Of a stretch of 64,000 nt of DNA, positions 14,826 through 64,000 are shown piece by piece. The notes under the pieces were generated by a model that was not told the origin of the DNA, ran no database searches, and was given only the letters and a program-made list of their open reading frames with translations. Made by a program: the position numbers and the translations under genes. The DNA comes from Podarcis filfolensis (lineage: Eukaryota): the NCBI GenBank assembly GCA_964270895.1, contig OZ185445.1; one strand, given 5' to 3'. Position 1 is the first letter of the stretch. Each line of letters begins with the position of its first letter.

Positions 14826-15125
<300 letters not shown>

Positions 15126-15966: not shown

Positions 15967-16041
15967 CAGCTCCTCGTCCTTGAGAGAAGTTCGGGTGGCC
16001 ATGGCTGAGGTAATTCCGGCCTTCCGGGACTGGACCAGCGA
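15967..16041 (-). CDS. UNC13B: UNC13B exon, 75 nt ([25 protein letters not shown])
   Basis: Acceptor ttttctttcccAG; donor CTG|GTAAGG; the peptide is the UNC13B-type version, not UNC13A. Confidence 0.97.
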
Positions 16042-17066: not shown

Positions 17067-17072
17067 CATCGC
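17067..17072 (-). CDS. UNC13B: 6-nt microexon GCGATG encoding Ala-Met, between ...LVSDL and SLVQSRK...
   Basis: ttctcttcctacAG|GCGATG|GTAAGT has a perfect donor and a good acceptor, is phase 0-0, and reproduces the 'AM' insert seen in Munc13-1 (LVSDLAMSLVQSRK). Confidence 0.88.
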
Positions 17073-18777: not shown

Positions 18778-18856
18778 CAGGTCACTGACAAGTGGGGTGG
18801 GCTTCTTCTTGCGCAGGTCAGGCATGCTGTCGATGCCATAGAGACCCCCGGCTGGC
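18778..18856 (-). CDS. UNC13B: UNC13B exon, 79 nt, phase 2-0 ([26 protein letters not shown])
   Basis: Acceptor cctttgctttctAG; donor CTG|GTGAGA; near-identical to the mammalian UNC13B peptide. Confidence 0.96.
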
Positions 18857-22831: not shown

Positions 22832-22878
22832 CCTCCTTTGAACCACGGTGACTTGGACGGATCGCCATCATCCGGACC
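22832..22878 (-). CDS. UNC13B: UNC13B shared exon, 47 nt, phase 0-2 (GPDDGDPSKSPWFKGG)
   Basis: Acceptor after a (CT)-rich tract ending tttaAG; donor GG|GTAAGT; homologous to mammalian IPDDGDPSLPQWLPEG. Confidence 0.92.
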
Positions 22879-25309
22879 CTTAAATGTTTTTTTAAGAGAG
22901 AGAGAAGGAGAGAGAGAGAGAGAAGAATTAATTGTGCTGAGCAAAGTTCCAGCCAGCTGCAGAGTTCAAAATCAGGGAGGACGTTTCATGCACGAAAATG
23001 CACACAAAGCGCTTCATGTTCATTAGCACCTCAGAGGACGGCAGGGAGGCTGTGCTGCCCAGTGGTGTGGACACGGCAGCACACACAGGAGAGGGGCCAA
23101 AAGAGCCTGTTCAGTGCAATGTGCTTTTGAGGGGGAATCAACCCACAAACATTTCTTTAAAAAAAACAAAACCCCAAGAGTTTGGCAAGAGCAGATCCTA
23201 CGAGTTTGATTTGAATCTGTGAAGTCCTAATGTTGCTGAGAACATTTCCAAAATACTTATTCATTGAGAGCACACAAACAAACAGAACAAACGGACGTAA
23301 GGCTACGGACACTGGAATTGAGTCACGCATCTGCCTTCCCTTCGGCCCCTCTGAAACCAGGGGAAAGTGTCTGGTCTCACACTGCTTTTCAATCCCTAAG
23401 CCAGGAAACAGCCGGGGAGGGCACTTCTGTGAGGTGCCAGAGGAGCCTGCCAGCTGTTCCTGGCACCTGCACCACCAAGGAGCTGCAGCAGCAGCAGCAA
23501 CCATTTAGTAGCAGCCTGTTTCCTGGAAGAACAAATACATGCTAGACAAATTCCTGAAAAGCAGCCATCCTTGCCTAGAGAGCACAAGGGAACAAAAGGC
23601 TCATGCAGGCAGCAGCATCCAATTCCCCAGCCTGAAGAGAGCACAAGAGAGAGGGCTCTGCCACCTCCATGGCTGGCGTCCAAGGCTCTCGACACGAGCA
23701 GCCCCACAGTCTGTGCAGGAAGCTGCCAACAGGATGAGCCCCAGAATGAGCACCGAGAGGAGGCAGGCTAATTCAATAGGAAGCCACTTATTCCAAGGTC
23801 CACAGCACTGTTGGAACCAGAGCAGCCAAGCAGTGGAACAGAAGCAGGCAAACAGTGAATGGTGAAAGGAGGAGCCCCTTTTGGTCAATTGCTCCCTTGT
23901 TCTTGGCCCCCTCAGTAGCCAACTGCCAAGTTTCTGCTAACTGCGCCAAGGAAGGCAACTGGCCCTTTGAATGAGGAGTTGGAGGGCAATTTCCACCCAG
24001 ACCCCTCCCTGGGAATCCGTGGCTGCCCAGGACTAACTCTCAGAGGAATTCCTATAAGAGCAAAGGTGGAGGAATCAACAGGAAAGCTGCCTGCGCCAAG
24101 CAAGTCACAGATCAATCATGTGGCATTCAAGAAATCCACTCATGTGAAGGCACGGCGCCAGTGCTAGCAGAGATGACGTGGCCACTTTGACTCACTCCTG
24201 TGACACACGAGAAGGGCAGCACAAGTGCTGGCTCACTCCTGTCGTGCTTCTGAACTAGCTGCAGGCATCTGCAAGAACAGGATGGTGGCCCAGACAGACC
24301 TCGGGTCTGATCCAGCTGCAGGTCTCCTCTGAGGTGCCTGGGCTTAAGTCTGCTGGCTTTGTGCAAGGATGCAGTCAGATTAAAGCGACAGAACATGTAT
24401 TTGGAGTCCAGATCGGCAGTCGAATGAAGCAAGCCCACTTGGGGAAGCACTATTTAGACAAACATAAGCAAAGGCCTCTGGATGCACAGCCTTCTCACCC
24501 TGGAACTTGTGCATGGAGACTATCAAATCTTAAACCAAAATGTCAAATGCATGATCTCGCTAAGAAACATGTAGACAAACCTCAATTAGAAACCTGCTTT
24601 GCTTTTTACAGAACGTTGCTCTTGGGCTTCATCCCTCTGGTGTCTGACTTCTGAATAAAATGGCTAGAAATGGACAATGAGTCTTTTGAGTTCAAGGAAG
24701 CACAAGGATAAAGCCCTTGTTGCTTGTAGCCTGCAGACCCCTAAAGACCATTTCTGCCCATCAGTTTGCACAGTTTGCACAATTGCAAAACAATTTTGCC
24801 CAGAAGCACCAGAAGAAATGGTGGCTCTGCCAATCCTTAGAATTAGAAGTAAGTCTTCTGCCAAAGTGACAAACACAAAATAATATTTATATTTTAAGTA
24901 CTGCTGCCCAAGAGGTAAGAGTTGAGCCTCTGTGACCCACAGATACACACACACACTCCAGGTAACCTTCCCACGCCACACAGTACATTTATCCTCTGCT
25001 GGGACTGGGAAGGAACTGCGTGCGCACAGCAGACATGGATTTGCAACATCAACAAGGTGTTAAGTAGGAATGTTTTCTTCCTTTATAAAAGCTACCTGCA
25101 CTGAACAGACTCCTCTCAGTTCATACACAAGATCAGGAATTCCTCCCAAGACTGTCGCATGCTGAACTTGCCAAGAGACTTGGCGGGGGGGGGGGAATAC
25201 TTCAGGGGTCAGCCAAACAGCCAAGTGACAATTCCACAGGGCATGCACAAATAACACACTGGAGTGTCAAAAGTAGGAGATACACTGGTTAGAATGAACA
25301 GTATATAAC

Positions 25310-25332
25310 CTGAAGTTCTCCTCTACTTCCTT
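25310..25332 (-). CDS. UNC13B: 23-nt microexon, phase 1-0, encoding (E)GSRGELQ; joins the bMunc13-2 exon to the shared exons
   Basis: Branch-like ttaac, a long pyrimidine tract (ctctcctttcctctcctttgtgtccccccacccctttctcctttgcAG), exon AAGGAAGTAGAGGAGAACTTCAG, donor GTTATA. It restores frame exactly and resembles rodent EGKREALQ. Confidence 0.85.
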
Positions 25333-26640
25333 CTGCAAAGGAGAAAGGGGTGGGGGGACACAAAGGAGAGGAAAGGAGAGTCACACAGTTAACACGGAAA
25401 AATTATGCTGTTGACCAAGTTTGGAAAATGAAGCAAAGCAGTGCAGAGATGTAAAATTTCTGTATCACCCCCAAAATCCCTAGTAGGAAAGGTCCATTTA
25501 GCTTGAAAAACATAGGCTCAACTTTGTACACTGAAGGTGCTGGAAGGTTGGGGTGGTTATGTTTTTAAAATTAATTTCTGTTGCAGTTTCAATGAAACAC
25601 TCAGATTTCATTTTCTTCTTAGCATCAACAACATATTGTGGGCACAGAATCTTAATGACAAGTAAACCTTTTAATTAGCATAGCATAGTCACACCTGCCT
25701 CGAAATCCACAACAGTACCAGGAACCTAAAAAAATCTTGACTCACTTAAGAAGTCATGTCCCCTCTCCTTAATGATGACCCACAAAGCTCCAGGGATCCC
25801 GAGAGTAGGCTGGCTCCCACATCCTCCTGAGAGGATGTCTTTGAGCCTGCGGCAAAAGGGTCCAGGGAAGCTGTGGTGACACAACATTCAGATAACTTTT
25901 TGTTCCATAAGGAAGGGAAAAGCCAAATGCTTCTGTTACAAAACTGCGGCACTGTCCCAGAAGCTAATACTTTTAACGAAGAAGGTTGGATAAAACACCA
26001 CACACTGATTTATCACGTCTAAATAACAAATCCATCAAATGCTATTGAAGCCTTCTCTGAACATTTTAAAAAAAAAAAAAATGCTGTGAGGTCTTGTCCC
26101 TCAGGACAAGCAAGCTAGCAGGGAAATGGATATACAGCTTTTTAGCAAACCCTTCAATTCAAAACACTCCACCTTGTGTATAAAAAAATGTTATGAAGGT
26201 TATTAGTGGTTCTTGGAACATTTGTTACACCAAAGGAGTCCAATGAAAGGCCAATGAGTGGCACAGGCAGGGGGGTCTTTCTCTCCCTCCCTCCCTCCCC
26301 ACTTGACGCACTCTTAAGGCTCAGGCAGACTTCCTCTTGCGCTGCGTTTCTGGGCCCAGGTCTGCACTTTAAAGCTCCATGTCTGAGCAGTTTCGTTTTC
26401 TCTTCCCTGCTGCTTTCACAGGTAGAGCCCACGTTTTACCACTGAATGAAGCAAACCACAATTGGGTTCCCCGCAGATTGCTATTTGCTCCGATTCAGCA
26501 GTAAAATGCGGGTTTTTACCGGGGAGGCGCCAGGACAAAACAAACAAAATGCTTGGACATGGAGTTTAAAGCCTGGAAAGTGTGGTGCAAAATGAAGTCT
26601 GGATGAGTGTTCCTGGCAGCTCAGTAGGCAAAGCCCTCAA

Positions 26641-29600: not shown

Positions 29601-29849
29601 TAGAACATCACAAATCATTTGGCAGACCTCCAGAAACTGGGGTTTTGTGTTTTTTGTTGTTGTTTTGTTTTTGCATTTGTTAAGGGTGCAGAGATAGGGC
29701 AGCCTTTGTCTTTGGCTCTTATCATCTGCTATCTCTGACCAAACTTCAATAAACCATTTCTATTTAATCATTCTGCCTGCAGCTGCTAAACTTTCTGACA
29801 AAAAATGAGCAAGCATTTCACCAGCAAATCTCAAGAACTTTGGGAGTAC

Positions 29850-32196
29850 CTGAATGAATCTCTTCAGCCGAGGAAGTCCAGCTTGCCTCCTGGGCCAGTT
29901 CCTTCAAGAGCCTCCGACGCATCTGCCTCTTTTCCCTCAGGACATTCTTGAAGTTGTTGATGCACTTGTTCAGGTAGATGGTCTCGGCACACACCTTCTC
30001 AAGGCTCATAGGTCGGCACCCGCCGGGCTGCACAGGCGCAGAACCCGGATCCTGCTGGGCCTCTCCAGAGGGGAAGGGCTGCTCCACACAGCTCTCGGAA
30101 TCCGGTGGGGGCACCAGGTCGGGGACCGGAGCTTTGTCAAGAGGCAATGAAGCACTGGGAAGAGTTCTCTGCATCAGGCCCACACTGTCACTGCTCACAG
30201 TCGTGTTAGCCTGGCTCTCAGAAGACTGACTAGGGGGAGTTTCAGCAAAGGTATCCAAGCTGCCATGCACACTTGGGCTACGGAGGGCAGGAGCTGGCTC
30301 ATTGTTCATATGGAAGCTCTTTTCCCCTTCAAGGAGGACTTCTGGGTCCCCGGTCTCCAGTTTGTGGAACACCACCTGCAGCGCAGACCGGAAATGATTC
30401 AGTGCTTTGCCCAGTTTGTTAGTGTAAAACCTCATGTCCACAAGATCAATGCTGTCCCGAGAGTGCTCAAGGAAGTACTGGGAATTTTCTAGGACATCCC
30501 TGAAGACCTGATCAGTTGGGTCTTGCTCGTTCAGGTCAATCTGGATCATGTCTTTGAGCGTCTCACTGCTGTCAACCAATTTGCGCAGAGCGCCATCACA
30601 GCCGGGAGTGGTCATGGCCACCGGTGCCTCCTCCAGGAGACTGACTTGCTCAGGACTGAGAAACTCCAGCGTGGTGGCATCACAGTCCGTCTCGCTTTCC
30701 CCTGGAGTCAGCCCTCCTGCTTGGTCCTCTTCCACAGGGGAGGAGCTGCCCTTGGTGGCATTTTCAGCATCTGAGGCACGTCCCCCTCCTCCCTCACACA
30801 AGGCGGGCACCTTGCCCAAGTACTCCGGGGATGGCAAGGAATCCCTGCCTGTGTTCTCATGCCCAGGGCCTTCCAGCTTCTTGTGGGATGCATCAAGGAC
30901 TCCAGCAGAAGAGCTGCTTTTGTGCAAAGTCTGCTCACTACTGCCCATTATTTGCACAACTCTCCCCACTTTTTCTTCAAGTTCACCAATTAAGTTGCTC
31001 TTCCTAGGTAGGGTGGATTTTGGTTGAAAGTTAAGCCTCTCCCCTACGTGGCGGTGAACCTCTTGGCAGGTGTTTTCCTGCTGAGCCTGGCAAGAGTCCA
31101 CTTGGAGCTGCCCATCTCCGTCCGTCCTGACCACCTCCCCACGAATGTGCAAGGAGCCCCAGTGGTTCCCACTCTGGCCTGGCGAGGGCAAGGTGCCCAG
31201 CTGTGCCCCAGGACCCACCTGGCCATTCTGCTGGCTTTGCTCACCACTGGCCACAATGGTAACTCCTGCACTTTGCAAAAGAATCGATTTCTGGAGAATG
31301 AAGTCTCGCTGCTCAGCGTTAGCAAGCTTTACAACAGCGGGTCGTGGGGCCAGCTGCTTGCCTGTTGCTGCACCAGATCTGTAAGCATCCTTGATGTACT
31401 TGCTACGCTGAATGCCATTGAAACAGTGGTACTCTGACAAGAAACGGTGGACTAGCTCCTTGGTGTTCTCCCCCTCCTGCTCTGGGATGCCATAAAAATA
31501 CAACACTGGCTCTCTGATGGGCCCTCCCAGGAGGGGCTCCCTGACCTTGGCCTTTGGCAATGGGGAGTTTTTGCTGGTGGGGCCAGAGCTGCTCTGCAGG
31601 CCCTCAATCTCGCTCAGAACAGTGTCCACGCAGCTGGAGACTTCGTCCACAGAGCCTTTGATCAAGGTGAGGTGCTGCTGGAGCTCAGCAATCTCGGTCT
31701 GGATGCGACTTATCCCTTGGAGCTCTTTCACGATGTACTCAATGACATCGGCAGAGCGGTCTCTGGGCCCAGGGCTGCAGGGAGTGTAGGCAAGGGGCTT
31801 ACTTGGAGGGCAGGGCCCTTCCCCTTCTCTTTCCCCAGCAACTCCCCTCCAGCCGGTGCCAAGGCTCAAGGCAGCGAGATCGGCTTGCCCCTTGGGGCTC
31901 TCCATTTGCTCCAGAAGGCTCTCTGCAGCCAGGCGGCCAGAGACGCCCCCTAAGTCACACTGGCTTGGAACTAACGCTCGTGGGGCTTCGATGTATCCAT
32001 CCCAGTCCAGCCCACCTTTACTGGCCTCCCTGGTCCCAGGGCTCCTCCCCTGAGCAGCGGAAAAGTCACTGCTTGCAGATTTCCTATTGACGCCACACAC
32101 AAAGGCGTCCGTTTCTATTTCCACGAGGGAAAGCTGCTGGTGGTGATTCTGGCTCAGGGAGAGCTCGCTCGCCGGCCCTTGCAGAAGCTTCTTCAT
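29850..32196 (-). CDS. UNC13B: bMunc13-2 (brain-type) alternative N-terminal exon, 782 codons + 1 nt, starting MKKLLQ
   Basis: ATG at 32196 in an AAGATG context aligns with rodent bMunc13-2 MKRLL. It carries ELQGISRIQTEIAELQQHL, LGKALNHFRSALQVVFHKLE (30355-30414) and CAETIYLNKCINNFKNVLREKR (to about 29896), the last two being the bMunc13-2 CaM sites. Donor TCAG|GTACTC is phase 1. An alternative in-frame ATG lies at 32325. Confidence 0.92.
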
Positions 32197-32503
32197 CTTC
32201 TCCTCCAGAAACAGCAGGGCCTTCTGCTTCTGAGAGGGCTGCCCAGTTAGGAGTTTCACAGCAGACGTTCTAAGCACAGAAGCAATGTCATCTTCTAGCC
32301 TTAGGGTGCCTCTGCCGGCGCACATCCTCAGTGGCCGTGTTGGCGCCCTCTCATCATGCCACAAAGCAGCAGAGGCCTGTGCCCCTCGCTGCCCGCCCAG
32401 CAAGGCTCTCTCGGCCAAGGATTAAGACTCATCAGAAGCCGCTGTCAAGAGAAGGGACAGAGACGCTGTGTATCGGAGTCAGTGGAGAAAAAAGCGATGC
32501 ACA

Positions 32504-52321: not shown

Positions 52322-52412
52322 CTCTTCAAACTGAAGCCGCACTTTATTAATGGCTCGGATCCAGCGGGCTCTTGCAGCGGGAAGAAGGAGAAGTTCATTT
52401 TCATCAAGGTGA
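52322..52412 (-). CDS. UNC13B: UNC13B ubMunc13-2 exon, 91 nt, phase 2-0, with the Ca2+/calmodulin-binding motif (ARARWIRAINKVRLQFEE)
   Basis: Acceptor gtttttcttttttgcaAG; donor GAG|GTAGGG; WIRAxxKVRLQ is the known Munc13-1/ubMunc13-2 CaM site. Confidence 0.95.
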
Positions 52413-55211: not shown

Positions 55212-58200
55212 TCATGCTGTTTTGGCTACTGGCCTTTTCTTCCTGAGTGCCTCAGGGCTACTCTGCTCCGCCGGCTGCAGTCCAGTGGCAAGTGTTTCCG
55301 TTTCTGGACAAGGGACACTTTCCTTCTGCTCTACTTCATCCAGAACCTGTGTGGCGCCTTCTGCTGGTTCCTCCAAGGGGAGCCCAGGAGGCTCGCTGGA
55401 AATGGTGCTTGGCTCATCTTCCGTTTCTCTGGAGACCTCAAGCTCCAGCTCTTTGTTGGGCGCAACTGGAATGTCAGGCGTGGGACCATCGAAGCATTCG
55501 TTGCTCTTGCTGTCGGGCTGCTTAGAAGAAAGGTCTGAATCAGCAGCACTGTCAGCTGGCTGGTCAGAGGCAGAGAGGTTTGGGCTCCCATCAGCCCCGG
55601 TCACATCCACTGCTTGTTCCTCGGCTTTCGAGACAGCTTCTGGTGCCTTCAAATCTAGTTTGGATGAAGCAATTGGGGCCACCTCCTGTTTGGAGGAAGC
55701 TTTTGGTGTTGGCACATCTGGTTCCTTCTTGAGACTTGCCTCCTTGGCATCTTTCTGCCACGGAAATGAGAAGTCCAGCTTCTTTCCAAACACAGCACCC
55801 GGCGCGCCCTCTACTTTACCTGCTTTCTCATCACTTCCTCCACCAAACAGACTTGAGGAAAACTTGTTGAAGCTGGACACGAGGCCTGGCTCAGGCACAG
55901 GCTTGCTTGCCGAGGGCGGCTGTGCAGAGAAGAAGGAGCCAAATGGCTTGCTGCTGTCTGCAGAAGACATGAAGCCGAATTTGGGCAAAGTGGGCATGCT
56001 TGGAATTTCAAACATGGGCTTGGTGCTGCTGGCCTCTGTAGGAGCACTGGCTGGCTTGCTCTTACCAGCCAAACTGCTTTTCAAGGGAGCAGCTTCTGGG
56101 GCTGCTTCGCTCACGGTTAGAGGCTCTTTCTGCTCAGGAGGAAGATCAGGTTTTATTTCAGGGACCTTTTCTATATCCTGATGGGGCAAGTCATGGGCCT
56201 CATCTGCAGCAGCTTTGGGTTCCATCTCCAGGGTCTCAAACGTGTCTGGTGGGCAAATATCAACATCTGCCTCATTCTTTATAGTTACTTCTTCAGTGGT
56301 TAGTGAAGTATCCGTCAGTTCTGGCAGTTTCAGGTGTTCATCTTCCTCACCAACCTTGGGTTCCAGCTCATGTGTACTGTCCAAATCCATTTGGCCAACG
56401 TCTGTTTCTCCTGCCAGGCTCACTTGCTCTTCAACAGCAGGGACAGCATCATTTTCTAAGGGCTCCACAGGCACTTCACTCTTCTCCTGCAGCACCACCA
56501 TCTCAACTGCATCATGTACCTCTTGACTACACGGGGCAGCCTTCCCTGCTTCATCAGATGCCAGTAAGTTTGTGTCCAGCTGCACCACTTCAGGGCCCTG
56601 ATCCCTACTTGAGTCTAAAGTTTCTGAAGCATTAAGGGAGGATTCCAGACCATCTTCAGGTCTTCCACTGCTTTCAGCTTCCAATTCTGCCCTACATTCT
56701 TTTCCCAAACTCTCATCTGCTAAAACAGAAGGGGCATCTTGTTTCAAGTCACTGCTAGCTTCTTTCTCTGTAGGTTCAGCCCTAGAGGTTTGGTCCGGTT
56801 GTTTCAAAACACTGCCGGCATTTGTCCCTAAAAGTTCATCCCTAGAGGCTTTATCTTGTTTTGCGAGACCTTTACCAGGAACTGGGCCCACAGCCTCCTT
56901 TGCCCTGGAGCTCATTTCCTGGGGTTTTGAAGTGCCTGCGGTCTTCCCTGCAGGCTTTGAAAGGGTCTCATCTGTTGCTCCTTTAAAAATGCCAAAGAGA
57001 TCACTTGTAAATGCTGGAGGAGGCCCAGTGGGCAGGGAGGAAAGGCCGAAAAACGAAGTGCTCTTCTTTTGGGCACTAGGAGCTGCTGGAGTCTGAGGCT
57101 GGGAAAAGAAGCCAGATAATGTTTTGGTTGGTTTCATCTTCGTCATGAAGCTGGAAAACATTTCAACTGAGGAATCTAGAACTGATTTGTCAGCCTCAGG
57201 TTCTTTAGGTTTCTCCTGCAGGTTAGGTGTTGCTGCTGCCATTTGAGGGAGAGGCCTCTGGCCCTGAGCCTGCTGCTCTCCTGCAGTATTTGGGGTCCTA
57301 TCAGGTTGCTTGGGCTCCGGGGGCTTGACTTCAGGGGCGCTTGGTTTTTCTTCAGGTACAACCTCCTGTGAAAGGTCTCCAGGAGCAGGAGATGGCTCAA
57401 GAGCCACAGAGGTCTCATCACAAACTGGACCGGGCTCTGCCTTTTCAAAAGTCTCGTTCCCAACTAAAGGAACAAATTCCTTCTCAGAGGACATCACAAT
57501 ACCACCATTCTTTTCTGCATTGTCTTGCAGCTGCTCCTCTGGTTGTGGAATCTCCAGAAGGGAAGGTGCAATGTCTTCCTGCAGCGTAGGGACCTGAGAG
57601 CCAGGATCAGGATAGACTGAGTGGTCTTCTCTATCTGCACCATCATCAGGAGGTTTACTGGCCACAAAAGGTATCTCTCCCTCATTTTCCACTTCTGAAG
57701 CACTGGCCGCAGCATGCTCAGCCACGGGAGTTTTTAACTCACTTGCCTTGTGCTCCGGGCCAACAGCCTCTTGCTTTCCAAGTACTGCTTCTATAACACC
57801 CGCAGCTGCCTCTTTATCCTTCAAGCCCTGCTGTCTGGCAAGTCCAATGCCAGAGTCAACAGAAACACACTGCTTCATAGATGGCTTTGCGTCTGCTTGC
57901 CTTTGAGGCGGCCTTCCCAGGTTGCTTGCTTGCTGCTGAGGTGGCTTTGCAATATTCCCCTTGTCAGGAGCAGCTGCCGGTGGTTTGTCATCCAGGAAGG
58001 AGGTCAGGTTGAAAAAGCTGAAGCTGGAGCTGCTCTGAGGCACGTTCTTCTTTGCGGTGGGCCCTCCCGAAAAGAAAGAAGGCATCTTGAACAGACCCTC
58101 TGCTTCCAGGGGCTTGGCATTAGGAGCTGCTGGAGCTGGGGCAGGGGCTTTCTCTGGGGCACCAAAGAAGGAGGAGAAGATGCTCTTGCCAGCCGGCTGT

Positions 58201-61200
58201 GGTGCCTGCGGAGGCTTCGAAGGTGCTGCCTGTGACAAGCCAAAAGGCAGGCTAAACCCAGAATCCCTGGGTGGCTGACTGGCTTTTCCTGGCTGAGTTT
58301 TACCAGGTATGGCTCCTGCATGGCCTTGCGGTCCCGGTGCAACAGCTGGTCCGTGGGCATGCTGCCCTGGAGAGTGATTTGCTTGGTCCATTCGAGGGCC
58401 TGCCTGCATGGGAGGCTTGGGTTCTGCACTCCCTGCGGTGGGGATGTCCTCCTTCTTCACTTGAGCAGCTTCCTTGCCTACTTTCCCATGCTGTTCTTCC
58501 TTAGGGACTGCGGCCTTCTGGGCAGCTTCCCCACGAGCCTGCTCCACGGGGATTTGAGGAGCAGGAGTGCTGCTCTTACTTGGCTCTCTGCTACGCTGGT
58601 CCGCGTTGTCATTCAGTTTCAGGGAGGTGTGGGTTCCACTCTTTGGTGGAGTAGCAGCACTTGGTGGGGCAGGGGCTGCATCGACTTTGAAAAGATCCCC
58701 TATGGAACCAAAGAATGATGAAATGCCTGGGGGCTCCACTTTCTCCTGAGGCATTTTCTTCTCGGCTTCATTTTTCGGCAGATTTGGTTGGGGTGCTGGC
58801 GGTGGCTGTGGGGCTTTGTTGACCTGCGTTTTAAAGAAATCAAAGAAGCCGGGGCCTTGACTTTTATTGGGTGCTGCAGTTGTGGAGGAGTCTTCTCCCA
58901 GGCTAAGAATCTTGAGAGCACTTTTAAACAACGTGCCCTCAGCCTCCGTGGGCGCTTGGCTGGGGGCTGGCTGGGTTTTCTTGGGTTCATCCTCACCCAC
59001 TTTAGGTTTTTGTTGACTTGGGAGGGGAGCAGGCTTAACACTTTTATCCAGCTGACTGGTCTTGCTGTCCAAGGGACCCTGGCTTAGCTGAGAGGAAGAC
59101 CTCACCAGCTGAGGCTTTTTCTGAGAAATCACTGGCTTTTCATCCCTAACAGACTTAACTAATCTGCCTCTCTCTTTTCTCTCTTGTTCATGCTCAGTGT
59201 GCTGCTGGTTTTGCATATCCTCTCCTGTTTTCCTGGGTGGCGAAGCTGGAAGACCATCGTTTTTGTGTCCCAACACCACCGGTTCTCCTTTCTTCACAGC
59301 CGCGTCTTCCACTGTCTCATGAGCTTCCATACCCTTACCCATCAGGCCACCCAAAGCAGAGAATAAAGATGCGACTTTATTCAGAGGTGGCTTTTTATCT
59401 TCTTCAGTGGTTTTGACTTCTGTAACACTCTGAGATGCCGATGAAGGCTCAGGCTTAGCAGAAGACTGGAATATATGGAAACCAAACCGTTTTGACTGTG
59501 CACTTTCGGAAACTGTCACAGCAGGGGTCCTGTCCAGATGTTTGGGTAGAGCATCATCTTTTAGCCTCCCACTGGAAGCCACCCTGGAGTGAACTCTAAG
59601 GTCAAGGGTCAGGGGAGGCTCTTCTGAGTGCCACTCCATGTCATTCTCAGGCCTAAAGTCTACTTTGAGTTTTTGAAGTTTGTACCCTGAAAAGTCTAAA
59701 GGCTGCTCTCTCTGGTAATAAATGGACTCCTCAAACATCTGCGAAAAGGTCTCTAAATTCATGTTCATAAGTTGATCACTTCTCTGCAGAGCTACAGACA
59801 AATCAAGTGGTTTGTTTACAGAGTAATTATCCAATTGCTCCTCTTCAGCAAACCAGAATAACTCGTCTTCATTACTAAGAGGCACTTTGAAACCGCAAAC
59901 GGCAATCATGTCATCTTCCAAGACAGTGTTCTGCAAAATGCTCTGCGGATAATTATAATCCCAGTAGTCTGGGTAGGTGTAAGTGTCAGGAGTGCAAATG
60001 TAGACATACTGCCCAGTGGGGTCGGTGAGCAGAGAATAAACAAACTGACCGTCCCTGTACATGTAATATCCACAATCGCCATCTTCCGATGGCCACCACA
60101 CGCCCTTCTCAAGCAGCATCAGCCAGTCCTGGTACTCCTGGCTATAAGATGAATAGACAAAACTGCCATCCAGGCTCAAGGACTCCTGATCAATTAAGGT
60201 CCACATATTGCCATCACATGCTGACGAATAGCTTAAGTCCATGGGCATCTCTTCCAAAATATAGCTGCAGTCATCAAATGGAGGAAAGTTTCCATTCAGA
60301 GAATGCGTTGTCCACATTTCAGTTTCTTCTAGACCTAAATCTTGTAAGTCTAACTGATCAAACGATTCGTGGGACATGACACTGAAATCCATGCTCAGAG
60401 CATCAAAATTCGCATTTGACCTCCAATCCACGACATTGGCATTGCCATCTTTTTTACACAAGTTCACTACAGCATCACTGGAGTCTGGCCATTCCAGGAA
60501 CTCAGCCAGTGGGACAGAATTCTGCTGCAAGACGTAGTAAACTGGCAAGGAAACCTGGTGGGCGTTAAGAGAAAATGCTCCTGTATCATATTCCCAGTCA
60601 AAGCTAGAGTGGCTCCTTGTTTCCTCAAGAGCAAGATGCTGCTCTGAGTGGCCATACAATTTAGCATTCAGCAAAGAGGAATTGAGAAATTCATTTGACC
60701 TTTCGTTGAGAACTGCTTGATAAATATTGGATTCCGTAGGTTGTCTATAAAGAGTTGGCTGCCCCGATAAGTCTTGTATCTTTGGCTGTGAGCTTAAAGC
60801 ATTCTGAGAGGGGGGGTGCCAAGGGACGGGCCCATGTCCGTTCTCCATTTTGCTCAGTTCTGGGTGAGGCAAATGACCATTCGCCTTTGCCGTCTCGGTC
60901 ACTGCCTCCTCCACTTTTTCTTTTGGCCTCTGCATGAAGTTCTTTATGAAGCTGCCCGTCTCCTGTTTCCCCCCAGTGCTTTCTTGGGGACCGGGAGTCA
61001 CATGTGAGCCAACGGACTTGTCACCAGAACTAGTCTCTTCGCTCCTCTCAAAAAACTTCATTATGCCCAGAGAGCCTGATTTTGACTTATCTGGCATACT
61101 TTCGGTCAGGTTTTCACTTGAAGCAAACCTAAATAATCCAGAAAGTAAGCCAGCTGATCTGCTCTTCTGGCTGTCCGTTTCATTTTTAGCATTCGACTCT

Positions 61201-64000
61201 TCCGTGTGGGTTATGTGGTCTGAAGACGGCCGCCGGAAGAGGCCCGAGAGCAACCCCTGCCCTGGCTGTGGGGCCTTCTTCGGAGTATCATCCATTACCT
61301 GGTCCTCTCTGATTCCACCAGGAAGCACTGGCTTTCCTGCTGTAGTCTTTAAGTCAGGTTCTTTTGTGGGGGCTGCCACCTCCCCCCCGGATTTGGAATC
61401 TTTGTGGTCCAGAGCACCCATGCCTTTGGTATCATGATCCATGTGTGCAATTTTTGAAGTGTCTGAGGTACCCTGCTTTTTATCTCCACTTTTTGGTGCA
61501 CCCAGACCATCTTCTTTACTGGTTTCTTTCTTCCTCGCCGGCTCCTCTTTTCTCTGCTGTGCCTCGGGAACTGCCTGAGACTTTGACGAGTCCATTTTGA
61601 CAGCTTCCGTGTTGCTGCTTTTGTGACCCTCTTCAGCCTTTGCTGGCTTGCCACTAAAACTTGGTGGGGCAGTTTGATCTTTAGAAGCTGTCAGGTTTTC
61701 CACAGAAGCAGCTTTCAAGAAAGAAGTGAAAATTCCTGGCTTCTCTTTGTTGTCCTGCGGTGGTTTGTCTGAAAAGCCAAAACCGCTCAAAAAGGGAATC
61801 TGGAGCTTACCGGTGAAAGGGAAGTTGGGTTCGCTGCTTGCGGAGCTCGTTTTCCTGACATCATCTTCAGAACGGTGACTTTTCCCCAAGCCCGGTGGTG
61901 GCTCCTTTGGCACAGTTTCAGTAGCAGAAGAAGGGAGTAGCATCTGGCTGAAGGATTTCTTAAGTGGACTGAAAAAGCTCTCAGATGGTTCCACCTGCTC
62001 CAACGGCGGAGCGTTACCAGCCTCCTTCTTGGCTTCACTTGGCTTGTTTTCTGGCACTTTCCCTGCAGGTTGTGGACTTCTTGGCATGTCTGGGTGTTCT
62101 TTAACAACTTTATCTGGCTGACTTGTGGCCTGTGGCGCCACATCAGAAGCCTTCTGTGGCCCACTTGCCTGCTTAGGAACAGCCAGACTCTCAAAACTGG
62201 CTTTCAAGCTGAAAGAACTAACGGAGCTCGACAGCTTGCCAAAGATGGAGGAGACGGGGCCGCTGCTTGCGCTCGCTTCTGCCTCGCTCTTGCTCGTTTC
62301 GGGAGGCGCAACGTTGGTGGGTTTTGTCGCGTTGCCTTCAGCTGCCTTCCCACCTGCCTTGGCTTCAGAAGCACTGGCATGCGTGGCTTCCACCTTCACA
62401 GCCTCCTCCTGTTTTGCAGTCTCTTTTTTCGGTGCTTCCTTTTCAGAGAAGATTTTCAAAGGGTTGAACATGCCGAAGACGGAGTTCACAACTGAGCTGG
62501 GGTCCAGAGAAGGGGGCGGAGCAGCGTTTGCCGAAGCATCCTGGACACTTGGAGGAGCCTTGTTGTCTCCTCCTGTCTTTTCCGGGATGCTGGCCTTGGC
62601 ATCACTGGCTTCTCGCTCACGGCTACTCTGGGTCACAGAAGGGGAAGCTGCAGTGGGCAACCTGGCATCCGATTTGCTTTCTGCTTTCAGTTCTGGAGAG
62701 GCACCCTCAGACTTAGGCTTACTTGAAAACAGACTTGTGATGCCTCCCTCAGGTTGACCAGGGGCTTCAGATTTCTCTGGTGTGGGAGATACAAGTTTTT
62801 CAACTGAGGCTGTTAAGTGCTTTGTTCCTGAGCCCACTTTTTCGGTGAAAGAACTAAATAAGGAGCTGACCGTGTTCTTTACCCCAGACAAGTCTGGCAA
62901 TGCCTCTGTTATGCCTTTGCTGCCCTCGCTCTCCTCTGTGGCAGAAGCAGCTGGCTTTGCAGGTTCCAAAGGGGCACTTTCCTCCGCCAACTTATCAGCA
63001 CTGGCCAGTTTGGGAGAGGCACAATCGCTTGCATTTTTGCTCGCAGGAAGGGTTTCAAATTTACTAATCTCCTCCTCTTTTTCAGCTAAGTATTCAGACA
63101 CAGTTTCAACTAAGCACTGCAGTTCATCCATTGTGTCCACGTATTCTTCCGTTGGCTCTTCAACAGGAGAGAGGGTCAAGTCTTGCTTAAGAAAGCCGTG
63201 CTTTCCTCCTCTCATCCTATGTGAGTTTTTGTCCCTTGGTAACAGGGATATGGCACTTCCAGTACGGGCGTCAGTAAGGTCTCCAACATGGCGAACACTG
63301 GATTCACGCCATGCTTGGGAAAGTATTGCTATTTCTTCCATTTCCTCATCATCATCCGAAACTGGGGAGTACAGCAGTACACTGGACGAACAGCTGCCAA
63401 ACTCTTTAAGGGCACCCATTGGCACAAAAGAGTGAGCTGGCTGTTCTGAATGGATCTCATTTTCACCATCAAAATGGACTGATCCCGAGTCATGCTTTGC
63501 GCGTTGGTTAGCGGACAACTTGCCACTCTTGACTAGAAGGCCATTCTTGTATGGACGCAGAACTGGATATTCCGGTAACTGTTCTTCACTTTCAATGGGG
63601 CTGCTGCCCCATTTCTCAGTTTCATCATAATCAGGATATAGGTTATGTTCAGTTCTTGCTTTAATGCTGCCTGAAGAAAATCTCCGGTTACCACTGCTTT
63701 GCAGTATAGTTCGGTCGCATTCTTCAAAATTGTTATATCTCAGCTTCTTCTTTCTTCTCCTGTCTATTGTGTCATACTCCTCTGGATAGCAAGGGACATC
63801 AGGATTTCCCGATTCTGGGCAAGCCTTCCGTGAGTATCTTCCTCTTTCATGATGGCCAAAGTTCTCCCTTTTCGAGAGCCTCGGGCTCCTTCGTCCCTGT
63901 GAACTTCTAGTCCTGTGACTTTTTTCTAAAAAATCTTCTATTAACTGTTTGCCTAATTCCTCATAGTTCTCTTCACACTCTTCCTGTTCTTGGCCAACTT
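55212..64000 (-). CDS. UNC13B: UNC13B giant alternative exon (about 2,930 codons in window, open at the right edge), mostly low-complexity and probably disordered
   Basis: The 2768-aa track ORF begins at a TTG. Translating by hand, the same frame stays open from 63518 to 64000 (...VGQEQEECEENYE...EYDTIDRRRKKK...LRPYKNGLLVKSGK). Motifs EYDTIDRRRKKK and LSPVEEPTEEYVDTMDELQCLVETVSEYLAEKEEEI match my recollection of the long mammalian UNC13B isoform. The ORF ends in TGA at 55212-55214. Confidence 0.88.
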   Translation of the reverse strand, partial: VGQEQEECEENYEELGKQLIEDFLEKSHRTRSSQGRRSPRLSKRENFGHHERGRYSRKACPESGNPDVPCYPEEYDTIDRRRKKKLRYNNFEECDRTILQSSGNRRFSSGSIKARTEHNLYPDYDETEKWGSSPIESEEQLPEYPVLRPYKNGLLVKSGKLSANQRAKHDSGSVHFDGENEIHSEQPAHSFVPMGALKEFGSCSSSVLLYSPVSDDDEEMEEIAILSQAWRESSVRHVGDLTDARTGSAISLLPRDKNSHRMRGGKHGFLKQDLTLSPVEEPTEEYVDTMDELQCLVETVSEYLAEKEEEISKFETLPASKNASDCASPKLASADKLAEESAPLEPAKPAASATEESEGSKGITEALPDLSGVKNTVSSLFSSFTEKVGSGTKHLTASVEKLVSPTPEKSEAPGQPEGGITSLFSSKPKSEGASPELKAESKSDARLPTAASPSVTQSSREREASDAKASIPEKTGGDNKAPPSVQDASANAAPPPSLDPSSVVNSVFGMFNPLKIFSEKEAPKKETAKQEEAVKVEATHASASEAKAGGKAAEGNATKPTNVAPPETSKSEAEASASSGPVSSIFGKLSSSVSSFSLKASFESLAVPKQASGPQKASDVAPQATSQPDKVVKEHPDMPRSPQPAGKVPENKPSEAKKEAGNAPPLEQVEPSESFFSPLKKSFSQMLLPSSATETVPKEPPPGLGKSHRSEDDVRKTSSASSEPNFPFTGKLQIPFLSGFGFSDKPPQDNKEKPGIFTSFLKAASVENLTASKDQTAPPSFSGKPAKAEEGHKSSNTEAVKMDSSKSQAVPEAQQRKEEPARKKETSKEDGLGAPKSGDKKQGTSDTSKIAHMDHDTKGMGALDHKDSKSGGEVAAPTKEPDLKTTAGKPVLPGGIREDQVMDDTPKKAPQPGQGLLSGLFRRPSSDHITHTEESNAKNETDSQKSRSAGLLSGLFRFASSENLTESMPDKSKSGSLGIMKFFERSEETSSGDKSVGSHVTPGPQESTGGKQETGSFIKNFMQRPKEKVEEAVTETAKANGHLPHPELSKMENGHGPVPWHPPSQNALSSQPKIQDLSGQPTLYRQPTESNIYQAVLNERSNEFLNSSLLNAKLYGHSEQHLALEETRSHSSFDWEYDTGAFSLNAHQVSLPVYYVLQQNSVPLAEFLEWPDSSDAVVNLCKKDGNANVVDWRSNANFDALSMDFSVMSHESFDQLDLQDLGLEETEMWTTHSLNGNFPPFDDCSYILEEMPMDLSYSSACDGNMWTLIDQESLSLDGSFVYSSYSQEYQDWLMLLEKGVWWPSEDGDCGYYMYRDGQFVYSLLTDPTGQYVYICTPDTYTYPDYWDYNYPQSILQNTVLEDDMIAVCGFKVPLSNEDELFWFAEEEQLDNYSVNKPLDLSVALQRSDQLMNMNLETFSQMFEESIYYQREQPLDFSGYKLQKLKVDFRPENDMEWHSEEPPLTLDLRVHSRVASSGRLKDDALPKHLDRTPAVTVSESAQSKRFGFHIFQSSAKPEPSSASQSVTEVKTTEEDKKPPLNKVASLFSALGGLMGKGMEAHETVEDAAVKKGEPVVLGHKNDGLPASPPRKTGEDMQNQQHTEHEQERKERGRLVKSVRDEKPVISQKKPQLVRSSSQLSQGPLDSKTSQLDKSVKPAPLPSQQKPKVGEDEPKKTQPAPSQAPTEAEGTLFKSALKILSLGEDSSTTAAPNKSQGPGFFDFFKTQVNKAPQPPPAPQPNLPKNEAEKKMPQEKVEPPGISSFFGSIGDLFKVDAAPAPPSAATPPKSGTHTSLKLNDNADQRSREPSKSSTPAPQIPVEQARGEAAQKAAVPKEEQHGKVGKEAAQVKKEDIPTAGSAEPKPPMQAGPRMDQANHSPGQHAHGPAVAPGPQGHAGAIPGKTQPGKASQPPRDSGFSLPFGLSQAAPSKPPQAPQPAGKSIFSSFFGAPEKAPAPAPAAPNAKPLEAEGLFKMPSFFSGGPTAKKNVPQSSSSFSFFNLTSFLDDKPPAAAPDKGNIAKPPQQQASNLGRPPQRQADAKPSMKQCVSVDSGIGLARQQGLKDKEAAAGVIEAVLGKQEAVGPEHKASELKTPVAEHAAASASEVENEGEIPFVASKPPDDGADREDHSVYPDPGSQVPTLQEDIAPSLLEIPQPEEQLQDNAEKNGGIVMSSEKEFVPLVGNETFEKAEPGPVCDETSVALEPSPAPGDLSQEVVPEEKPSAPEVKPPEPKQPDRTPNTAGEQQAQGQRPLPQMAAATPNLQEKPKEPEADKSVLDSSVEMFSSFMTKMKPTKTLSGFFSQPQTPAAPSAQKKSTSFFGLSSLPTGPPPAFTSDLFGIFKGATDETLSKPAGKTAGTSKPQEMSSRAKEAVGPVPGKGLAKQDKASRDELLGTNAGSVLKQPDQTSRAEPTEKEASSDLKQDAPSVLADESLGKECRAELEAESSGRPEDGLESSLNASETLDSSRDQGPEVVQLDTNLLASDEAGKAAPCSQEVHDAVEMVVLQEKSEVPVEPLENDAVPAVEEQVSLAGETDVGQMDLDSTHELEPKVGEEDEHLKLPELTDTSLTTEEVTIKNEADVDICPPDTFETLEMEPKAAADEAHDLPHQDIEKVPEIKPDLPPEQKEPLTVSEAAPEAAPLKSSLAGKSKPASAPTEASSTKPMFEIPSMPTLPKFGFMSSADSSKPFGSFFSAQPPSASKPVPEPGLVSSFNKFSSSLFGGGSDEKAGKVEGAPGAVFGKKLDFSFPWQKDAKEASLKKEPDVPTPKASSKQEVAPIASSKLDLKAPEAVSKAEEQAVDVTGADGSPNLSASDQPADSAADSDLSSKQPDSKSNECFDGPTPDIPVAPNKELELEVSRETEDEPSTISSEPPGLPLEEPAEGATQVLDEVEQKESVPCPETETLATGLQPAEQSSPEALRKKRPVAKTA

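Follow-up and report, generated by a model that had tools for sequence, protein, structure and literature searches.

The 23-nt microexon found on the minus strand at 25310..25332 of the window (the whole 64,000-nt stretch of Podarcis filfolensis DNA that was analysed) is regarded, with a probability of about 0.85, as the lizard orthologue of the linker exon of bMunc13-2, the inclusion of which would be helped by RBFOX proteins and the mismatched products of which would be filtered by NMD, no direct coupling of splicing to the promoter being needed. bMunc13-2 is the brain form of Munc13-2 (UNC13B), a gene of the nerve terminal, and the microexon links its brain-specific N-terminal exon to the portion that every isoform shares. 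Its identity as the linker exon rests on the sequence, on conservation from frog to mammals, on gene models and on a curated rat isoform. The microexon is already known, being annotated in the sister lizard Podarcis muralis, in about 100 other amniote models and in rat isoform b. The present analysis adds the conservation, from frog to mammals, of its length, its weak donor and a downstream UGCAUG, and identifies the frameshift exon (FSE) of the ALS field with the bMunc13-2 linker exon.

Methods

The loci compared were those of eight tetrapods, namely the lacertid of the window, Gekko kuhli, Tiliqua scincoides, the snake Ahaetulla prasina, the bird Eurypyga helias, the frog Ascaphus truei and the two mammals Chinchilla and Galemys; the alignment was made with MAFFT. 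Gene models were collected by searches with the b exon and by a protein search with a stretch around a marsupial model's junction as query, which returned 201 proteins, the best 120 of which were taken; the 113 proteins of at least 900 aa from the two sources were scanned. Single exons or database proteins served as the queries of all searches, and joined translations were used for frame arithmetic only. The comparison with the human gene is that with three primers printed in PMC8891020, which provide 21 nt of FSE sequence. A premature stop was taken as the mark of a poison exon when a later exon junction follows it at a distance of more than about 55 nt.

Sequence and splice signals of the microexon

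The microexon is read on the minus strand as 25332..25310, has the letters AAGGAAGTAGAGGAGAACTTCAG and is flanked by AG and GT, being preceded by ...ctcctttgcag and followed by gttatatac; its body is 78% purine in base composition. A sequence-only reading of the window had placed a 23-nt exon here, and its coordinates are exact. The acceptor region (25333..25382, minus strand) is a pyrimidine tract ending in ...tttgcag with UGC at -5..-3, and C and T make up 87% of the 47 nt from -50 to -4, in agreement with the very long tract claimed in that reading. The donor, GTTATA following CAG (25304..25309, minus strand), also has the letters reported for it and is sub-optimal as was claimed, carrying T at +3 and lacking G at +5.

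Downstream of the donor, the RBFOX-type motif TGCATG (UGCAUG in the RNA) is present at 25242..25247 on the minus strand (+63..+68), where the same reading had placed it; it lies 63 nt past the donor and is invariant in all the eight tetrapods. A second GCATG occurs at 25158..25162 (minus strand, +148..+152) and a single GTGTGT hexamer at 25254..25259 (minus strand, +51..+56). The UG-rich context claimed for this region stands as far as that one hexamer is concerned, but the richness is only modest, G and T together accounting for 57% of the positions from +20 to +80. The window carries 200 N.

An adaptor between two reading frames

The exons around the microexon follow one another on the minus strand in the order 32325..29850, 25332..25310 and 22878..22832. 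The first is the large exon specific to bMunc13-2 (29850..32325, minus strand), which is coding from the ATG at 32325 and ends as ...GAG ATT CAT TCA G|gtactc at 29850 (donor CAG|GTACTC), leaving one codon base and hence phase 1. It is contained in a long ORF (32418..29818, 866 aa) and shares 96% identity, along 825 aa, with residues 1-825 of the P. muralis protein XP_028604624 ('protein unc-13 homolog B'); its best relatives in the protein search are squamate, and a Pfam search of this exon gave no match. The N-terminus of UNC13C (Munc13-3) is a relative of this exon. The third is the shared 47-nt exon (22832..22878, minus strand), which encodes GPDDGDPSKSPWFKGG and starts in phase 0; the shared 79-nt exon (18778..18856, minus strand) comes next after it. 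The last exon specific to ubMunc13-2, of 91 nt (52322..52412, minus strand; …ARWIRAINKVRLQFEE), encodes ...RLQFEE at its end and ends in phase 0. Upstream of it lies an ORF of 2768 aa (55212-63518, minus strand), for which a Pfam search gave no match; at the snake locus there is a UNC13B model of 4364 aa, in which the exon of this ORF may be included.

An exon of 23 nt (2 mod 3) is needed between the b exon and the 47-nt exon, because the former ends one codon base in and the latter starts in phase 0. Frame arithmetic on the window confirms this: the frame is open when the b exon is joined through the microexon to the 47-nt exon, phase 1 being converted into phase 0, and the microexon, preceded by the G that the b exon leaves over, is translated into the eight residues EGSRGELQ. 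Direct joining of the b exon to the 47-nt exon gives GGG TCC GGA TGA, with the stop at 22870..22868, the immediate TGA on skipping of the microexon being due to the GAT GAT of the 47-nt exon. The phases, the exact bridging and the stop on direct joining are thus as the sequence-only reading had given them.

The reverse holds for the ub exon, as was also claimed. The frame from the ub exon directly into the 47-nt exon is open, whereas insertion of the microexon after 52322 leads by the same arithmetic to about 74 out-of-frame codons and then to a stop, TG|A at 15968/15050, which spans the junction of the exons 16041..15967 and 15050..14830, three exons downstream. At least five further coding blocks follow this stop in the window, which places it further than about 55 nt upstream of a later junction, as expected of a poison (NMD) exon. 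The claim that the exon works both as an adaptor and as a poison exon can be divided: the adaptor is genuine, and the frameshift and the premature stop in ub transcripts follow from arithmetic, while the NMD itself is documented for the human exon (PMC8891020).

Frame arithmetic alone proves little: within the 6,971-nt interval, 365 stop-free AG...GT segments are able to bridge the two frames, and 19 of these are of 23 nt. It is the conservation, together with the gene models, that singles out this segment among the 365.

Gene models containing the microexon

An 8-aa peptide of the form E-G-x-R/Q-x-x-L-Q was found at the junction in 104 of the 113 models by an automatic pattern scan (the junction-centred search contributing the best 120 of its 201 proteins), most of the supporting proteins being automatic models that may copy one another. 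Two more models with the 8-aa peptide or a 7-aa form were recognised by eye; 12 models are without the anchor motif on which the pattern scan relied. The models with the peptide belong to placental mammals, marsupials, birds, a crocodile, turtles and the lizards P. muralis, P. raffonei and Sceloporus.

The junction of the P. muralis model, ...AEEIHS EGSRGELQ GPDDGDPSKSPWFKGG PAGG..., is identical to the conceptual splice of the window, and EGSRGELQ itself is identical in the Podarcis, crocodile, turtle and Sceloporus models. At the same junction the curated rat Unc13b isoform b (NP_074053.2) has EGKREALQ. In both XP_028604624 of P. muralis and NP_074053.2 of the rat the linker thus occupies the same place, following the b N-terminal exon and preceding the 47-nt exon, and is likewise an insert of eight residues; nothing of substance distinguishes the exon of the window from them.

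The microexon is missed by the Ensembl P. muralis model A0A670J7R2 (P0186), by models of Microtus (P0132) and Glossophaga (P0149) and by a metaclust sequence (P0026). The peptide of A0A670J7R2 at this place is translated intron, consisting of read-through of the b donor and of the pyrimidine tract that precedes the 79-nt exon; the rodent and bat models lacking the microexon similarly translate a pyrimidine tract (NFFL.FLK). Judged by these translations, the few models without the microexon are recognisable artefacts. The matches to a fragment of a database protein that spans the junction (P0011:690-850) were genomic ORFs only, with no spliced transcript contigs among them.

Small variations of the peptide also occur. 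Two chicken (Gallus gallus) isoforms, P0181 and P0182, have an extra Val after ELQ, which suggests an acceptor of the 47-nt exon shifted by 3 nt, and a cuckoo isoform (P0172) is without the first Glu.

Conservation from frog to mammals

The length of the microexon is 23 nt in all the eight species, from frog to mammals. The lacertid of the window, Gekko and Tiliqua share it without any nucleotide difference, whereas the b-exon protein is just 69-75% identical among them. The snake matches the window at 22/23 positions, the bird at 20/23, the frog at 18/23 and the two mammals at 16-18/23. The splice signals are retained along with it. The donor is GTT(A/G)T, with T at +3, in 8/8 species; the acceptor tract is 79-96% pyrimidine across the eight; and the acceptor reads ttgcag in six of them, the exceptions being Chinchilla (ttgcgg) and the bird (tcacag).

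TGCATG is found at +53..+95 past the donor in every species, and a second GCATG at +89..+162. In Tiliqua the second GCATG lies at +89, and the column aligned to the second site of the other species reads GCGTG. The alignment is invariant at the exon core, at CAGGTT.T, at a short G.GT block and at GCATG. Calculated from the local hexamer density, the probability that TGCATG occurs by chance within 60 nt is about 0.013-0.04 at each locus; for four independent lineages together it is about 3e-7. A conserved sub-optimal donor combined with a downstream UGCAUG is the sequence signature of a regulated, and not merely a constitutive, exon.

Runs of (TG)n of 8-13 nt between the donor and UGCAUG are found just in Chinchilla and Galemys (L005:23699-23711 and L007:12210-12242), and the GTGTGT of the window aligns with these longer runs; in the bird and the frog there is no (TG)n run of at least 6 nt between the donor and UGCAUG.

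In Chinchilla lanigera the dinucleotide at the acceptor is GG and not AG (…ccttgcGG|AAGG…, L005:23625-23626), and the NCBI model still uses the exon; this represents either an assembly error or a non-canonical acceptor.

Relation to the human UNC13B frameshift exon

An annotated frame-shifting exon situated between exon 10 and exon 11 of human UNC13B was described by Brown et al. 2022 (PMC8891020). It is included on TDP-43 knockdown, as the sequence-only reading had stated for TDP-43 loss, its inclusion rises with CHX (cycloheximide) or UPF1 knockdown, TDP-43 iCLIP peaks lie near it, and it triggers NMD of ub transcripts (PMC8891020). The FSE and one of its junctions also belong to the 'shorter isoform UNC13B-210', and it is this isoform that is expressed in brain tissue and not in the cell models (PMC8891020). 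In normal GTEx tissues, Sinha et al. 2025 noted a high PSI for the UNC13B 'cryptic exon', which they regarded as probably normal alternative splicing (PMC12297563).

The published primers place this exon at the position of the microexon. The exon-10 forward primer matches the 91-nt exon of the window at 14/20 positions and the RT-PCR reverse primer has 18/20 matches in the 79-nt exon (PMC8891020 for both), while the 'within FSE' primer aligns at offset 2 of the microexon, where its matches number 15/21 in the window, 18/21 in Chinchilla and 19/21 in Galemys. Read in the b frame, the 'within FSE' primer encodes EEKRGALQ, the mammalian consensus. By these matches, the lizard microexon is the orthologue of the human UNC13B FSE, and the human counterpart at the same place that the sequence-only reading had suggested is borne out.

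The resemblance extends beyond the primers. The human FSE, like the lizard exon, has the orthologue of the 91-nt ub exon before it and that of the 47-nt exon after it; it frameshifts ub, and a brain-expressed shorter isoform shares it. The human 'frameshift' or 'cryptic' exon accordingly appears to be an obligatory coding exon of bMunc13-2; within the literature library searched on bMunc13-2, UNC13B and TDP-43, no paper was found that names the FSE as the bMunc13-2 linker exon. Two differences are seen. The stop after inclusion lies three exons downstream in the lizard, whereas it is placed at the start of exon 11 in human (PMC8891020). Long UG repeats, of a kind compatible with TDP-43 binding, are found beside the exon in the two mammals examined, whereas the lizard has one GUGUGU. 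Control of the microexon by TDP-43 in the lizard is doubtful because the long UG runs occur just in the two mammals, and the mammalian (TG)n runs may be the place where such control was added in the mammalian lineage.

Comparison with neural exon classes

Downstream (U)GCAUG enhancers are a feature of RBFOX-activated neuronal cassette exons. The microexon resembles these exons in having UGCAUG within 100 nt downstream, in the conservation of this motif across tetrapods and in its position beside a brain-isoform exon; with the conserved motif at +63 in the window, it falls well inside the ~300 nt of downstream intron considered for this class, and a role of RBFOX is predicted here.

SRRM4-dependent neural microexons are reportedly of 3-27 nt and have a UGC placed after the pyrimidine tract and ahead of the 3' splice site. 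The layout of the microexon is of this type (23 nt, with UGC before the AG as part of ttgcag in 6/8 species), and it shares with the SRRM4/nSR100 microexons a length of at most 27 nt, a strong tract with UGC, conserved flanks and a neuronal gene. It differs from them in that its length is not a multiple of 3 and in that it is obligatory for the b frame and destructive for ub.

A 6-nt microexon of Unc13b is known to be regulated by nSR100 (SRRM4), and the paper concerned covers that Unc13b exon only (Quesnel-Vallieres 2015, PMC4387716). An identification of the 23-nt exon with it was considered and rejected, the 6-nt one being a separate exon at 17072..17067. This exon, GCGATG (Ala-Met; minus strand), lies 8 kb downstream of the 23-nt exon, with the 79-nt exon before it and the SLVQSRK exon (16041..15967) after it, has the acceptor ...ttcctacag and the donor gtaagt, and is orthologous to the microexon that Quesnel-Vallieres 2015 describes. 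Some gene models include 'AM' and others lack it.

Proposed mechanism and the question of promoter choice

bMunc13-2 arises from its own promoter together with alternative splicing (Kawabe 2017, PMC5379939). Transcripts from the ub promoter have the microexon inside an intron, and its inclusion there is predicted, from the arithmetic and the orthology, to bring a frameshift and a premature stop in the lizard. The microexon is probably too short and its donor (GTT(A/G)T) too weak for unaided recognition, which would rest instead on the strong pyrimidine tract, the purine-rich body and the conserved downstream UGCAUG. RBFOX proteins would bind UGCAUG and promote inclusion in neurons, inclusion being favoured there because these proteins are present. 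NMD would then remove both the product of b transcripts that skip the exon and that of ub transcripts that include it, so that the two in-frame mRNAs accumulate, and the level of inclusion would split the output between b and ub with no coupling of promoter and splicing.

The sequence-only reading had concluded that splicing must be coupled to promoter choice. This does not follow, since NMD alone would leave just the two in-frame mRNAs. Both the mismatched products carry premature stops, and NMD would therefore be enough to make splicing look promoter-coupled.

The b start lacks a CpG island (observed/expected CpG of at most 0.49), and nothing is therefore said on the promoter from the sequence. 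A candidate acceptor, …ctcttgacag|cggc…, is present at 32430-32445 on the minus strand, about 115 nt upstream of the b start codon; this acceptor, together with the lack of a CpG island, makes it possible that the b exon is preceded by a separate 5'UTR exon.

Alternative readings

True coupling, in which the exon is included just on transcripts of the b promoter and skipped on those of the ub promoter, is considered rather unlikely. It could be achieved if the cap-proximal b donor prefers the strong acceptor of the microexon, or through promoter-dependent elongation or loading of factors, and the geometry of the window fits it, the b donor being 4.5 kb and the ub donor 27 kb from the acceptor. 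In human, moreover, the FSE junction reads of brain accompany UNC13B-210, and cell lines with ub only have little baseline inclusion (PMC8891020). However, nothing in the sequence requires coupling to the promoter. Human cells with ub only do include the exon, and more of it with CHX, UPF1 knockdown or TDP-43 loss (PMC8891020), which indicates that it is accessible to ub transcripts; and given the conserved UGCAUG, the differences between tissues are equally well explained by cell-type regulators.

The 23-nt and 47-nt exons are both 2 mod 3, so that joining the ub exon through the microexon directly to the 79-nt exon would be in frame. The two exons might thus be mutually exclusive in ub, with KEVEENFR replacing GPDDGDPSKSPWFKGG. 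The translation of this combination (52322-52412, 25310-25332 and 18778-18856 of the window) is indeed open and rejoins the shared frame, and the ub-frame reading of the microexon is stop-free in 8/8 species. A purine-rich 23-mer is, however, readily stop-free in two frames, and PMC8891020 describes the FSE as followed by exon 11. The junction occurs in none of the fetched proteins, all of which were selected for the b exon, and their silence is accordingly a weak argument. This arrangement is held to be quite improbable.

It is very hard to credit that the microexon is unused in the lizard, with the b exon joined through another donor (TG|GTGAAA, 29822) to the acceptor at 18856, or ended by read-through. 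The Ensembl model A0A670J7R2 does join sequence read through the b donor to a 79-nt exon that is extended upstream, and by phase arithmetic the TG|GT donor is in frame with 18856. Against this, the Ensembl peptide stems from intron, being a translation of the pyrimidine tract that precedes 18856, the NCBI models of two Podarcis species and Sceloporus include the microexon, and its sequence is nucleotide-identical across far-diverged lizards, with flanks conserved from frog to mammals.

That the microexon is merely one of the 365 stop-free AG...GT segments of the interval, or of the 19 of 23 nt, that happens to fix the frame is refuted by the fact that this segment only is conserved in sequence, length and flanks in eight tetrapods and matches an annotated peptide.

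Significance

An RBFOX-assisted linker exon with NMD as the filter is thus the reading preferred here for the exon of the window. For this genome, the analysis confirms the correct annotation of a microexon that is hard to find, and the Ensembl Podarcis model, along with those of some other pipelines, provides an example of the loss of microexons in automatic annotation. A modest point concerns work on ALS/FTD, in that the FSE appears to be the coding exon that the b isoform needs, with splice signals kept from frog to mammals. If so, this would explain its high level in normal brain and its poor value as a marker of TDP-43 loss.

As a tentative and more speculative extension, which may well prove wrong, the microexon might have acted as a reciprocal gate throughout tetrapod history, inclusion making b productive and ub a target of NMD and skipping doing the reverse, with the ratio set by RBFOX and a further, mammal-specific layer of control by TDP-43. 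If such a gate exists, repression by TDP-43 through expanded UG repeats would be a later layer confined to mammals, and the ratio of RIM-anchored ubMunc13-2 to ELKS-anchored bMunc13-2 in each neuron would be set post-transcriptionally by way of a weak donor.
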